Shown in pieces: positions 19,020 to 24,434 of a stretch of 64,000 nt of DNA. A program made the translations under genes and the position numbers. How positions within the stretch are numbered: the first letter of the stretch is position 1; every line of letters begins with the position of its first letter. The DNA is from Zancudomyces culisetae HAW-14-8 (lineage: Eukaryota > Fungi > Kickxellomycota), in contig JBNJNM010000012.1 in assembly GCA_052426225.1 (NCBI GenBank), positions 2,356,001-2,420,000 of the forward strand, read 5' to 3'. Under the pieces are notes generated by a model. The model searched no databases and was not told the origin of the DNA. It saw only the letters and a list, made by a program, of their open reading frames with translations.

Positions 19020-19662
19020 TCATGAAAATATTTGGTTTTTCTTGTTCCAAATCTGTTGTACTTCACCTTGCTTATCCTTTGGTGCACCAGGAATTGTCTT
19101 TTGCCACCCAAGCGAAGTAAAGATGCATTCGTTAAATGTACGTTCCTGAGGTCTACATGATTTGTACTCTTGATTGTTGAGATCGAGACATTTCCAGTGG
19201 CTGGCAAAGGAGTCGGCACAATGTTGCTTGACCTTGTTTACTCTATCGTTTAGATTTAGATTTAGATTTAGGTTTAGATTTAGGTTTAGATTTAGGTTTA
19301 GATTTATTATATTATATTACATTTGAACATATAACAAATCCACCACAACATTAACAAGATTTAAAACAATAAAAGAAGGGGGGAGAGAGGGGAGGAACTT
19401 ACACTTCAATTCCACAATCTGTAACCTGTTTACCCTGACTCAAACATGCCTTGGGATCGTTATTATCTTGTTTGCACAACATAAAGTCGTCCGTCTTATC
19501 TTTACACACTGCGCCGAGGAAAAAGGCGACGGATTTCAATGGTGCGCTGGTCAAGCCAAGTTCCGGGGTGTTGGGGTCGATATGTGGATCGTCTGCCGGT
19601 AGTGGTGTTGGATCGACCCATTCGGTTGCGGGCATGTATGAATTTCTTCGTGTCGATGCCAT
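19020..19662 (-). CDS. NDUFA8: Complex I accessory subunit NDUFA8 (20.8 kDa, CX9C). Exons 19662-19403 and 19242-19020
   Basis: ELGLTSAPLKSVAFFLGAVC-x9-C...DPKAC-x9-C. Exon 2 reads VNKVKQHCADSFASHWKCLDLNNQEYKSCRPQERTFNECIF, giving four CX9C pairs. Phase-2 GT-AG intron. Confidence 0.92.
19249..19306. repeat. (TTTAGA/TTTAGG)n hexamer microsatellite in the NDUFA8 intron
   Basis: About nine tandem TTTAGR units read directly. Confidence 0.8.
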
Positions 19663-19988
19663 TTTTATCTTTTACCTTTTTCCTTTATTTTATTTTATTT
19701 TATTATTGTTATTATTATTAATATAGTTTTTCTTTATAAACTTTTGCAACTTTGATAACTTGATAAAATTGTACTAGAATTTTTATTTTATTTTTTTGTT
19801 TGATGTTTCTTTTTTCTTTATTTGTTTTATTTTTTTTTTGTTTTTAGATTGTGTTTGAATTATTTAATTTTATTTTTTTAAATTTTGCAAAATAAAAATT
19901 TATCCTTATTCCATCATCCTCCCTATACTCTCTTGCCACCTTGATTATCTTTCCCCATAACATATATATCGTACCAACTCGACACTCC

Positions 19989-19994
19989 TATAAA
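19989..19994 (+). promoter_or_regulatory. TATA box of the tRNA-Sec gene
   Basis: TATAAA located 26-31 nt upstream of the tRNA 5' G at 20020, as in TATA-dependent eukaryotic tRNA-Sec promoters. Confidence 0.65.
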
Positions 19995-20019
19995 TTGCCA
20001 ATTTCAACAAAGCATCTTT

Positions 20020-20108
20020 GCACTGATGAGATCGATCGGTTTATCGGTGGCAGGCTTCAAACCTGTCGGTCGTTAATTCGGCAGTGGTTCGACTCCACCT
20101 TCGGTGCG
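20020..20108 (+). tRNA. tRNA-Sec (selenocysteine tRNA, anticodon TCA at 20057-20059)
   Basis: Folds by hand into a 9-bp acceptor stem GCACTGATG/CTTCGGTGC (one U-U, one G-U), a 6-bp D stem ATCGAT/ATCGGT, a 6-bp anticodon stem GGCAGG/CCTGTC with loop CTTCAAA, a variable arm GTCG-TTAATT-CGGC, and a 4-bp T stem GTGG/CCAC with loop TTCGACT. Discriminator base is G. GCAGGCTTCAAACCTGT matches the vertebrate tRNA-Sec anticodon arm as I recall it. Confidence 0.96.
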
Positions 20109-20115
20109 TTTTTTT
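20109..20115 (+). terminator. RNA polymerase III oligo-T terminator of tRNA-Sec
   Basis: A T7 run immediately follows the discriminator base. Confidence 0.85.
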
Positions 20116-20534: not shown

Positions 20535-22407
20535 ATGAATTTTAATTTACGACCCCCGGGGCAACCTCAACCTCAATCTCAACAACAACCTCAACAATCT
20601 TCGAATCCTCCAAATCCTTCGAATCCTCCTCACATGCTATTCAATATGGGAAGACCTGGTGGTCCCCCAGTAATCCAAAATAATGCTGGAATGCTCCGTC
20701 CTCCTTCTTCCATTCCACCAGGCCAACCCCCACTTTCATATCCACACCCACACCCACACCCACATCCACTTCCGCGTCCCCATTCGATGCCACATCCAAT
20801 TCCAATTCCACATCCACATGCGCACCCAATTCCACATGCACACCCACACCCACACCCAATTCCTGCTCCACACCCTATCCTCCACTCTCCCGTACCACCC
20901 CTAGAAACGACACCCGTATCCCTGTTTGTCGGTGGAATCCCCCAAGGTATTCCCGATGAATTTATCACCTCGCTACTCAGTGCCTGTGGCGAATTAAAGA
21001 GCTGGAAACGAATGGTCGATGCCAACGGTACACCCAAAGGCTTTGGTTTCTGCGAGTACACATCGCTAAATAATACTCTTAGAGCCCTCCGTGTCTTGGC
21101 CGGCGGAATTGGCAGTGATTCTCCAAAGATCCTACTTACCTCACCCCAAGATGATTGTAAGTCCTCTCCTTCTCCCTCGTTCTCCTCCTCTTCTTTCCTT
21201 TTTTTTATGTTTATCTAATTGTATAATTATCTGTGTGTATAGCTACTTCACGAGAAAAAAAGGCATTGATGGTGAAAGCCGATGATAACGCCCAGTTGAT
21301 TCTCAACAATTACCTGAGACTGAAACCAGTTACCAATGTAAGTTTAGCCCTAACACACCATACACATACATATTCCTCCCTCTCTTTATTTTTTTTTTGT
21401 TTTGTTTACTCTATTTATACACAAATTTGTAATAATAGGACGATATAGAAAAAGATAAACAAGCAGAAACACAAGTAAAAACTCTGGTTCAATCATTAAC
21501 AAACGATGATGGGTCCGCCCCAGAAACCGGTTCGGCCAGCCAACTTACTGCGCGACAAAACTCCGACATAGAGCGCCAGAAACAACTGGCTGAAGAAGAA
21601 AAGCGCGAAGAGCGGTACGAAGAACGACGGAAATTAGATAACCTCGACGAATTCAAGCGCTTTGAACGCCGCCATCTCGACGACGAAGCCGAATTGCACC
21701 GCCGGCTAGACCGGCTGCTCAAGCGCGAGGCCGACTACGCCGAAACACGGCCTGCCCGCGCACGCGAAATGGACGAGCGTCTGGCCGCGTGGGATGACGC
21801 CGATGTCGAGCGGGCGGGATCTGAAGAGTACTACCGCAACCGCGAACGTTGGTGGCGCCGCCGACAGTATGTACTCGAGCGTGAGCAACAGGCAGATGAT
21901 AAGGACCGCAGTGAGGAGGCACGCGAGATGCAGGCTGTGCTTGAGGAGGAACGCCGAGCGGCACAGGTGCGGGAACGTAAATTGAAGATGCAGCAGCTTG
22001 TGGAGAGCATTCCGGTTGAACCCGACCAGTTGTTTTCGTATCCAATCAAGTGGAACAATCTGAACGATACGATTTTGGATTCCAAAATCAAACCAGTAGT
22101 GATTAGCAAGTTAAACGAGTATATTGGATTATCATCTGATAATGCTGAAGGAAACACAAACAACAAATCTAGTAATAACGGAAGTGGTGGAAATGAGAAT
22201 GAAAAGCAAAACGAAAATAAAGACGCAGAAAACGAAGAATTGTTGGAAATGGCTGACTTTGTCATTTCCCAACTCAAATCCCATGTTAAACCTGCCGACC
22301 TCGTCAGTGAGCTGGAAATGGTTTTGGATGAAGAAACCAAAATATTTGTAGCCAGACTATGGCGCGTATTGGCATTTGAAACCGAAGCTGTTGACTTGCT
22401 TTCCTGA
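20535..22407 (+). CDS. SNU71: RBM25/Snu71-like U1 snRNP protein (RRM, charged coiled coil, PWI). Exons 20535-21156, 21243-21337 and 21439-22407
   Basis: RRM LFVGGIP...CGELKSWKRMVDANGTPKGFGFCEY; WDD motif; PWI domain IPVEPDQLFSYPIKW...LEMVLDEETKIFVARLWRVLAFE. Two GT-AG introns preserve the frame. N-terminal (PH)n repeat. Confidence 0.88.
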
Positions 22408-22460: not shown

Positions 22461-24434
22461 TTACTTGTGATTTAGATTTATCTTTTCTCTTAATTCCTTG
22501 ATGATTTCACTCAATCCTTTGCCTCCGTCACTACTATTACCTCTCTCTACATTTTTTTTGTAATTATTATTATTTTGAATATACACTGCCGCCTGTGGAT
22601 CTGTAGTAATGAATGCGTTCATCTCCTCCAGTAATGCAACTATGACCCCTTTTATTTCCGCATTGCCGCCAGAAATGTTATCTACCGCATGTTTGGTAAT
22701 AAAGTTGTACAGTTCAGGGTCCACTCGTACCTCTACTGATCCGTTTTCCCGCCTTGAAATATCAATAACCTTGCTTAAGTTCAGGCTTTGAGTAGCACTA
22801 CCTACTCCTTTCTCTTGCTCTTGCTCTTCATTTTTTCCATATTTATTGTACTCCAAAACTCTTGTTTTGACCGCATTGAAAATCATGCTCAGTACAGAAT
22901 AACAAAATGCAAAAAATTCCTTTTCTTCACGAGCTTTAGTAGTTGCACTTGAACTTGCACTCTGAGGCTGATTTTCCCCTGTTCTTTTCAGTACTTTGGT
23001 TTTGAACACGTCTAAAGAACTGGTTATTGGTCCAATCACTCCGGTCTTTAAAAATTGATCTAGCAAAAATTGGTAAAATACCATCTGGTTCCCCAAATTC
23101 CCCCAAACTCCCTGTTGATAACTCTCGATAAACGCAGTAACACCCCCTTCCTCATCGTCACCATTAGTATTCTGTCCCCAGGAATCTCCCACATCCACCA
23201 TTTTCATCAACTCGGTATAAAATACTTGACTACCTACATAGCCACCTGTGTACTGGCTATCATCCTTTTCGGCTTTATTCTGCACCAAACTCATTAATTT
23301 GCAAAGCACTTCAATTCGTTCATTATTAGCTATTTGCTGTTCTATTTCTGCTTTTCTTATATCTGCGTATATATTGATCGCAAACAAATGTAAAACCACT
23401 GGCATTTCGCAAATCAACTCCAACCATCCTTCCTCCATCACATGAATATCATGCTTTCCACTTTCCCTGGATCGTTTCCTTCGTCGCTCCGCCTCAGTAA
23501 GTGCCTGCTCCAGCAACTCCATTTTTTTGAAATCAAGCTCCATTTCGTTTTTTCTTATTGCCGCATCAAGTGTCCAAATAGCTGTATGCATCCCGTCTCG
23601 TTCTAGTAATACCGTATTATCTCTAGCGTGTAACGCCATCAGCAATTCTAACCGAATTGTTCCTCTTTCTCCACTACCCAGTTCACGCCTGCCAATACTC
23701 TTTGTTGTCTGGAGATAACTTACTACCTTTTCATATAACTCTACATCCTCGCCAATAATCTCGACAATTTCCTCAATCGCTTCATGCTCGTTTTTTTTGC
23801 TATACAATCCTGATACGACTATTCTATTCATGTCAAACATACTCGTATCCACAGCTCGATCATTCAGAAAAGGTTCCAGACTCTTATCCAGGTACTTTTT
23901 CAAAACACGCTCATCACTATTCCACAATTTTTGTTTCAAAACCGAATTAGCTTCACCATACAATCCTTCATTTTTGAAAAACTCCTCACAAACCTTTGAA
24001 CTAAGCCTGCTATCTTCTACCGTATTCAATACCCTAAAAATTAGTCTTCTAACACTTTCGTTGTGGATTTTCCCCTTTTCCCCAACATTTTCCATAATTT
24101 TTTCTACAAAATCCTGCTTTTGTGCATCGATAGCAGTATTTACACCACCAGGTCTAGTAAATCCGTCTTCATTTGTTGTTGTCGTTGTTCTTGCCTTTTT
24201 CTCTATTTTTTCCGCGATCATCTCCATCATTTTCTCTGAAACTCGCTTGTAGAACCTGTTTTCTCGGATATTACTCATTTCCAACAACTTGTATATTTCT
24301 GAATCCATTTCTATTCGATTTTCCTGTTGTATTTTTGTAACTCCCGTGCTCAGTTTCCCACTGCTCAGCTCCTTCCTTATTGCCTCTGCAGATCCCTCTC
24401 CCAGCAGGTACTTGATTCTTTTTCTTTCACCCAT
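22461..24434 (-). CDS. NELFB: Negative elongation factor B (COBRA1-domain) homologue
   Basis: GTIRLELLMALHARDNTVLLERDGMHTAIWTLDAAIRK aligns by eye with metazoan NELF-B CTLRAELLMSLHDLDVGEICTVDPCHKFTWCLDACIRE. IVEIIGEDVELYEKVVSYLQT matches LTRMVGKNVKLYDMVLQFLRT, and VLKQKLW matches EVKRQIW, in the same order. Confidence 0.8.
   Translation of the reverse strand: MGERKRIKYLLGEGSAEAIRKELSSGKLSTGVTKIQQENRIEMDSEIYKLLEMSNIRENRFYKRVSEKMMEMIAEKIEKKARTTTTTNEDGFTRPGGVNTAIDAQKQDFVEKIMENVGEKGKIHNESVRRLIFRVLNTVEDSRLSSKVCEEFFKNEGLYGEANSVLKQKLWNSDERVLKKYLDKSLEPFLNDRAVDTSMFDMNRIVVSGLYSKKNEHEAIEEIVEIIGEDVELYEKVVSYLQTTKSIGRRELGSGERGTIRLELLMALHARDNTVLLERDGMHTAIWTLDAAIRKNEMELDFKKMELLEQALTEAERRRKRSRESGKHDIHVMEEGWLELICEMPVVLHLFAINIYADIRKAEIEQQIANNERIEVLCKLMSLVQNKAEKDDSQYTGGYVGSQVFYTELMKMVDVGDSWGQNTNGDDEEGGVTAFIESYQQGVWGNLGNQMVFYQFLLDQFLKTGVIGPITSSLDVFKTKVLKRTGENQPQSASSSATTKAREEKEFFAFCYSVLSMIFNAVKTRVLEYNKYGKNEEQEQEKGVGSATQSLNLSKVIDISRRENGSVEVRVDPELYNFITKHAVDNISGGNAEIKGVIVALLEEMNAFITTDPQAAVYIQNNNNYKKNVERGNSSDGGKGLSEIIKELREKINLNHK

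Follow-up and report, generated by a model that had tools for sequence, protein, structure and literature searches.

Use of selenocysteine (Sec) by fungi came as a surprise in 2018-2019. Mariotti et al. (bioRxiv 10.1101/314781; journal version, Nat Microbiol 2019) selected genomes by their tRNA-Sec, counted Zancudomyces culisetae among the users of Sec, its selenoproteins being SPS and SelH, and presented trees that support vertical descent. A HiFi assembly of strain HAW-14-8 then recovered the SecS that had been missing earlier, and expression was reported (PMC12611240). The tRNA-Sec of Z. culisetae and its use of Sec are already known, and because the species itself was named as Sec-using (bioRxiv 10.1101/314781), our core finding is a rediscovery. 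The interpretation in the initial annotation of the locus, which had cited Sec use in a few early-branching fungi including Harpellales, is supported. What is added here is the CCCCATAAC plus TATA promoter of tRNA-Sec and a possible third selenoprotein.

Two kinds of RNA polymerase III (Pol III) promoter are relevant to this locus. Vertebrate tRNA-Sec and U6 have a type 3 promoter, in which a PSE and a TATA box are used together with SNAPc and Brf2-TFIIIB (PMC4671959). In the yeasts studied, U6 and tRNA promoters consist of a TATA box, an A box and a B box with TFIIIC, and in S. cerevisiae a PSE-like sequence is dispensable (PMC5855946).

Identity and flanks of the tRNA-Sec gene

We analyzed a 64-kb stretch of the HAW-14-8 HiFi assembly, hereafter the window. 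A saccharopine dehydrogenase encoded in it is 100% identical to a Z. culisetae protein, the next matches being to Smittium and Furculomyces. The sole Rfam hit across it was to the tRNA-Sec model RF01852, at 20020-20107 on the forward strand (57.9 bits, above the gathering score, which is 47; E = 4e-9), and ARAGORN called the locus as tRNA-SeC(tca). The intact 89-nt tRNA-Sec gene proposed in the initial annotation was thus confirmed, by the covariance model as well as by ARAGORN. Features of the locus are listed in Table 1.

Table 1. Features of the tRNA-Sec locus (window positions) and of the candidate selenoprotein gene
Feature	Position	Strand	Evidence
NDUFA8 exon 1 (subunit of complex I; gene divergent from tRNA)	19438..19662	-	PDB match E 2e-10, obtained with this exon in older assembly
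PSE-like element CCCCATAAC at -67, common to U1, U2, U4, U5 and U6 snRNA genes	19953..19961	+	Exact 9-mer match
TATA box (TATAAA from 19989) at -31, 36 nt after start of PSE-like element	19989..19995	+	Sequence; identical in older assembly
Intronless 89-nt tRNA-Sec gene with eukaryotic 9/4 fold; CCA not encoded	20020..20108	+	Rfam, ARAGORN, pair-by-pair check, free fold
D arm, 6-bp stem and 6-nt loop (4 usual)	20031..20048	+	Rfam model, pair-by-pair check, PMC5330540
Anticodon TCA, reads UGA	20057..20059	+	ARAGORN, pair-by-pair check
Long variable arm, 16 nt, 4-bp stem	20068..20083	+	Pair-by-pair check
Discriminator G73	20108..20108	+	Pair-by-pair check; seryl-tRNA synthetase identity role per PMC5330540
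T7 run directly after G73	20109..20115	+	Sequence
RRM+PWI gene (SNU71/RBM25-like), downstream, same strand as tRNA	20535..22407	+	Domain matches
Unannotated two-exon SelK/SelS-shaped ORF, candidate selenoprotein	C11:4824645-4825251 (L014:912-1518)		Codon pattern

The acceptor stem has nine positions, made up of eight standard pairs and one U-U at the eighth pair, and is joined by a 2-nt linker to a 6-bp D stem. The anticodon stem is also 6 bp long, with the loop CUUCAAA, and the 4-bp T stem completes a 13-bp acceptor plus T helix in the 9/4 arrangement, the nine including the U-U. The 9/4 register of the initial annotation therefore stood, but its fully paired acceptor did not; the 6-bp D and anticodon stems, long variable arm, TCA anticodon and discriminator G that it had claimed were all seen pair by pair, as were the TATAAA near -30 and the T7 terminator at the positions given in Table 1. 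The human tRNA-Sec acceptor stem also has a U-U pair (U6-U67). The T7 run 3' of tRNA-Sec would serve as an RNA polymerase III terminator. When the 8/5 register was tried, pairs were broken in both stems, and the unconstrained minimum-energy fold was the same cloverleaf (-31.6 kcal/mol, z -2.2). The gene fits the features of eukaryotic tRNA-Sec described in PMC5330540, where the D-loop is normally 4 nt; the 6-nt loop here, a 2-nt insertion relative to the Rfam model, departs from a length that is typical, not absolute. Genome-wide, a covariance search gave a single tRNA-Sec copy above the gathering score, with 20 other weaker matches below the cut-off; those that were checked were tRNA-Ser genes.

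As the TCA anticodon reads UGA, an opal suppressor tRNA-Ser or tRNA-Trp, or a general reassignment of UGA, could be considered. However, the 13-bp acceptor plus T helix and the 6-bp D stem are specific to tRNA-Sec and distinguish the gene from the tRNA-Ser of this genome, and dedicated Sec enzymes are encoded. This explanation is largely refuted by structure, and we regard it as exceedingly improbable. By contrast, it is very likely that window 20020-20108 is the one functional tRNA-Sec gene in the nuclear genome of Z. culisetae and that it was vertically inherited.

The gene lies between NDUFA8 and a downstream RRM+PWI gene, the latter consistent with SNU71, in agreement with the flanks claimed initially. 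The older Z. culisetae assembly (GCA_001969505.1) has the same gene order, with 98.4% identity over 11.8 kb. In strain COL-18-3, tRNA-Sec, CCCCATAAC and the TATA box are identical, and the flanks carry substitutions and indels; conservation between the two strains is not strong evidence, because at 98.4% they are too close.

Aedes mosquitoes use Sec, which bears on a possible ancient host origin of tRNA-Sec. Contamination is worth weighing, as is recent acquisition from bacteria or the insect host, since Z. culisetae lives as a gut symbiont and is known to carry a gene derived from its host (PMC12611240), and some fungal assemblies are contaminated by bacterial tRNA-Sec (bioRxiv 10.1101/314781). 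However, the fold is 9/4, not 8/5, the gene bears this genome's own snRNA element, and it sits among fungal genes on a multi-megabase contig and also in an independent assembly; published protein trees favor vertical descent (bioRxiv 10.1101/314781). The fungal flanks and the identical locus in the second strain's assembly rule out contamination, upholding the earlier argument from fold and flanks against a bacterial source, and we give next to no credence to contamination or recent transfer as the origin of the gene.

No match was obtained when the tRNA-Sec was looked for in metagenomes, and following synteny into Smittium and Furculomyces failed to lead to the tRNA-Sec gene of either. Importin-5 and saccharopine dehydrogenase lie near each other here (window 10921-39064) and in contigs of two relatives (L077 and L078, fetched via a Furculomyces protein); the intervening genes differ between the relatives and the window, so that this is loose macrosynteny only. 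The window also contains a homologue of NELF-B/COBRA1 in a fungus (22461-24434, reverse strand; Pfam E 1e-12), which was already annotated as NELF-B in the older assembly and is otherwise without a match.

Upstream elements common to tRNA-Sec and the snRNA genes

The 9-mer CCCCATAAC occurs only once in the window (0.35 copies expected), upstream of tRNA-Sec, and had been missed in the initial annotation. Exact copies are also found 5' of U2, U4 and U5, between -68 and -81 relative to where the models start, and 77 nt before U1, the genome-wide list of sites having preceded the locating of U1. The distance from CCCCATAAC to the TATA box, measured start to start, is 36 nt at tRNA-Sec versus 35 nt at U6, whose transcription start we placed 9 nt upstream of the model start on the basis of its 5' hairpin. 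Across the genome there are 60 copies on both strands (control, 156), and therefore the probability of a chance copy is about 3e-5 per 30-nt upstream window; six of the 60 lie at tRNA-Sec and the five major snRNA genes (U1, U2, U4, U5 and U6). At nine tRNA-Ser genes, the best upstream sites have at least three mismatches to CCCCATAAC and none is an exact copy. Because these nine genes lack its upstream layout, tRNA-Sec was compared with U6. Exact CCCCATAAC was absent near the MRP RNA, U3 and SRP RNA genes.

No known RNA gene is linked to the remaining 54 copies, of which 14 have a longer 12-mer; the majority may have arisen by chance, and some may mark unknown small RNA genes, for which CCCCATAAC would offer a handle. 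The U6 snRNA has a short additional hairpin 5' of its T run (L071:1490-1520, reverse strand). In ARAGORN output, a tRNA-Ser(TGA) is followed within 1-3 nt by a tRNA-Gly(GCC), with no terminator between them (L063:1500-1657), and this dicistronic pair is apparently repeated at five places with the same downstream letters (L063, L064, L065, L066 and L068).

SNAPC3, the one SNAPc subunit examined, maps to C11 (194 bits; E 1e-35 against the structure of the human subunit). Since CCCCATAAC and the TATA box are common to the snRNA genes and SNAPC3 is present, the sequences suggest that tRNA-Sec probably uses an animal-like, snRNA-type (PSE plus TATA) Pol III promoter. More broadly, it is quite likely, judging from these shared motifs, that Z. 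culisetae retains an ancestral SNAPc/PSE system by which tRNA-Sec and all the major spliceosomal snRNAs are transcribed. Our literature search, whose coverage is incomplete, found no description of such a promoter at a fungal tRNA-Sec.

A functional tRNA-Sec could instead be transcribed from internal boxes like an ordinary tRNA, with the upstream 9-mer being incidental or serving the divergent NDUFA8. Its T loop does resemble a B box, CCCCATAAC is located some 290 nt from the start of NDUFA8 in the intergenic region that the two genes share, and binding of SNAPc to the element is predicted from motif sharing. However, the element has the same strand and distance as at U6, with similar TATA spacing, and occurs at all five major snRNA genes versus none of the nine tRNA-Ser genes. 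Moreover, the genome holds only 60 copies, and vertebrate tRNA-Sec itself uses PSE plus TATA (PMC4671959). We consider transcription from internal boxes unlikely.

With an snRNA-type promoter, Pol III would be recruited mainly from upstream, by SNAPc bound to the PSE-like element and by TBP/TFIIIB on the TATA box. tRNA-Sec would then be transcribed like U6 and vertebrate tRNA-Sec, rather than via the internal A box of ordinary tRNAs. The transcription start would probably coincide with the mature 5' G or lie very close to it, because this G is the first purine after five pyrimidines and the TATA spacing is U6-like (-31 versus about -29 in U6); transcription would end at the T7 run.

Sec machinery, recoding signals and a candidate third selenoprotein

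To locate the Sec machinery, spliced genes were searched exon by exon, not as joined sequence. SepSecS was found on C14 (220 bits) and eEFSec on C6 (E 1e-18 to human eEFSec structures). A PSTK-like kinase is encoded on C21 by an intact 439-aa P-loop ORF, for which the best NCBIfam models are both PSTK (E 2e-8 and 4e-6); its score of 34 bits is far below the curated cut-off of 382, and the kinase is reported as PSTK in the assembly paper (PMC12611240). None of these three matches contains internal stops. The initial annotation had predicted a full set of Sec factors: SepSecS, eEFSec, SPS, SelH and the PSTK-like kinase were found, but SBP2 was not located by our genome-wide L7Ae and pattern searches, which gave SNU13, RPS12, L30, NHP2, L7a and chance hits. 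SBP2 of Z. culisetae is reported in PMC12611240. RPS12 and RNase P-like hits occur on both C19 and C21, NHP2 twice on C7 and U3 three times on C15; these identical or near-identical copies are segmental duplicates or haplotigs.

SPS, on C21, has an in-frame TGA at the Sec position (motif KG-TGA-GC), and SelH, on C11, has one in its CxxU motif (IEHCTR-TGA-RVF). A Pfam Rdx search of the genome gave no match, and SelH was found instead by codon pattern, in searches that also gave many chance hits; it was assigned by the CxxU motif and the published annotation. Both reading frames run on beyond the TGA. SPS apparently starts with an exon coding the ATG alone, followed by an intron (L004:2861-2863, reverse strand), an arrangement that, along with the in-frame TGA, would lead standard annotation astray. 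With translation from the first ATG, SelH would have about 155 low-complexity residues, lysine-rich and then acid-rich, before the CxxU (L044:550-1038).

By analogy with the known eukaryotic pathway, seryl-tRNA synthetase would load serine on tRNA-Sec by recognizing G73 and the long variable arm, PSTK would phosphorylate the Ser-charged tRNA, and SepSecS would convert the phosphorylated form into Sec with selenophosphate from SPS. eEFSec and SBP2 would then bring Sec-tRNA to the UGA of a few mRNAs, namely SPS, SelH and perhaps a SelK/SelS-like protein.

Canonical SECIS elements were not detected: RF00031 had no genome-wide hit above the cut-off, and none was present near SPS, SelH or the third candidate described below. 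A lone SECIS_1 hit lies within the coding sequence of acetyl-CoA carboxylase and was dismissed as chance. Hairpins around the UGA of SPS (z -0.7) and SelH (z -0.4) were not above shuffles, and a SECIS-like reading of the SelH 3' UTR was rejected as weak (z -1.6, no proper G-A quartet). The initial annotation had held that its reading would be refuted by a genome lacking eEFSec, PSTK and SepSecS and any SECIS-bearing gene. SepSecS, eEFSec and a PSTK-like kinase were found, but canonical SECIS was not; its absence is not a valid refutation here, because most fungal selenoprotein genes lack a detectable SECIS, which was found in 5 of 16 such genes (bioRxiv 10.1101/314781). Our best guess is that SBP2 recognizes divergent stem-loops in the 3' UTR and that UGA is recoded in this way; support for any particular structure is weak.

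These results also bear on whether tRNA-Sec is a relic, left with an intact sequence by a pathway on its way to being lost, in which the UGAs of SPS and SelH now act as stops. Such a reading would accord with the missing canonical SECIS, the weak PSTK score, an SBP2 not found in our searches, and the many losses of Sec among fungi (bioRxiv 10.1101/314781). However, all tRNA arms, the terminator and the promoter elements are intact and identical in two strains, the SepSecS, eEFSec and PSTK matches are uninterrupted, and the SPS and SelH frames extend past the TGA. RNA-seq expression of the machinery and selenoproteins has also been reported (PMC12611240). A relic is thus very unlikely, and a functional tRNA-Sec is the preferred reading.

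SelK and SelS are characterized by a single hydrophobic helix, a Gly-rich tail and Sec within the last few residues. In a codon-pattern search, we found a reading frame ending GGGG-TGA-G-TAA at C11:4825234. Because the GGG-TGA-G pattern was no commoner than its control, the pattern alone is no evidence. Exon 1 of this candidate (Table 1) has an ATG, 106 codons, one hydrophobic helix (hydropathy 1.8, residues 17-35) and a GT donor after L014:1229; possible in-frame acceptors of the intron, near 1326 or 1353, are AAG, not the usual YAG. The protein would have a mass of about 17-18 kDa. In both exons the proposed frame outscores the next-best one, by 17 and 20 bits, the score of exon 1 not being above background in absolute terms, and in the stretch between the exons the proposed frame is not favored. 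The 180 nt after the candidate form a long hairpin that has no SECIS quartet (z -3.5 versus dinucleotide shuffles and -3.0 versus block shuffles); its stability exceeds that of 13 control regions downstream of stop codons. A Pfam SelK_SelG search of the genome found nothing, and no homologues were detected with Pfam SelK, Pfam SelS or database proteins, in searches of low power in which the short, low-complexity exons were queried apart. The TGA could be an ordinary stop; that this ORF encodes a third, unreported selenoprotein is a proposal we make tentatively. More doubtful still is the combined reading, in which an ancestral SNAPc/PSE system serves tRNA-Sec and the snRNAs, and this tRNA-Sec decodes a third, SelK/SelS-type membrane selenoprotein whose 180-nt 3' UTR hairpin replaces SECIS. 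If true, a third selenoprotein with such a hairpin would suggest that Sec insertion in Harpellales relies on another kind of signal.

Comparison with known systems

With its tiny selenoproteome and no recognizable SECIS, Z. culisetae offers a compact system for UGA recoding without the canonical element, and a third target gene would supply a third UTR for comparison. The shared CCCCATAAC plus TATA promoter suggests that snRNA-type transcription of tRNA-Sec predates animals and survives in a culturable fungus, and could provide a native U6 promoter for genetic tools.

The fungal tRNA-Sec of Mariotti et al. is the closest described case: the species is the same, the gene is identical in GCA_001969505.1, SPS and SelH are the same, and there is likewise no canonical SECIS. 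The tRNA promoter, the D-loop and a SelK/SelS family member in fungi are, by contrast, not described in that preprint (bioRxiv 10.1101/314781). The candidate resembles SelK/SelS-type ER membrane selenoproteins in its short N-terminus, one hydrophobic helix, charged and then Gly/Ser-rich disordered tail, and TGA as the second-to-last codon after GGGG, but lacks a sequence match to Pfam SelK or SelS and has no SECIS.

Yeast-type U6 and tRNA promoters share the TATA box and the oligo-T terminator with the locus described here. In Z. culisetae, by contrast, SNAPC3 is encoded, and snRNA genes of the Pol II and Pol III classes have a fixed PSE-like element in common. Vertebrate tRNA-Sec (TRU-TCA1) is similar to the Z. 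culisetae gene in its 9/4 fold, 6-bp D and anticodon stems, G73 and single copy, and in having an snRNA-shared upstream element plus a TATA box near -30. It differs in that the D-loop here is 6 nt, not 4, and the variable arm is shorter; moreover, unlike in human, the MRP RNA gene has no exact CCCCATAAC. As Brf2 is described as vertebrate-only, a Brf1-type factor would be expected to take its place in Z. culisetae.
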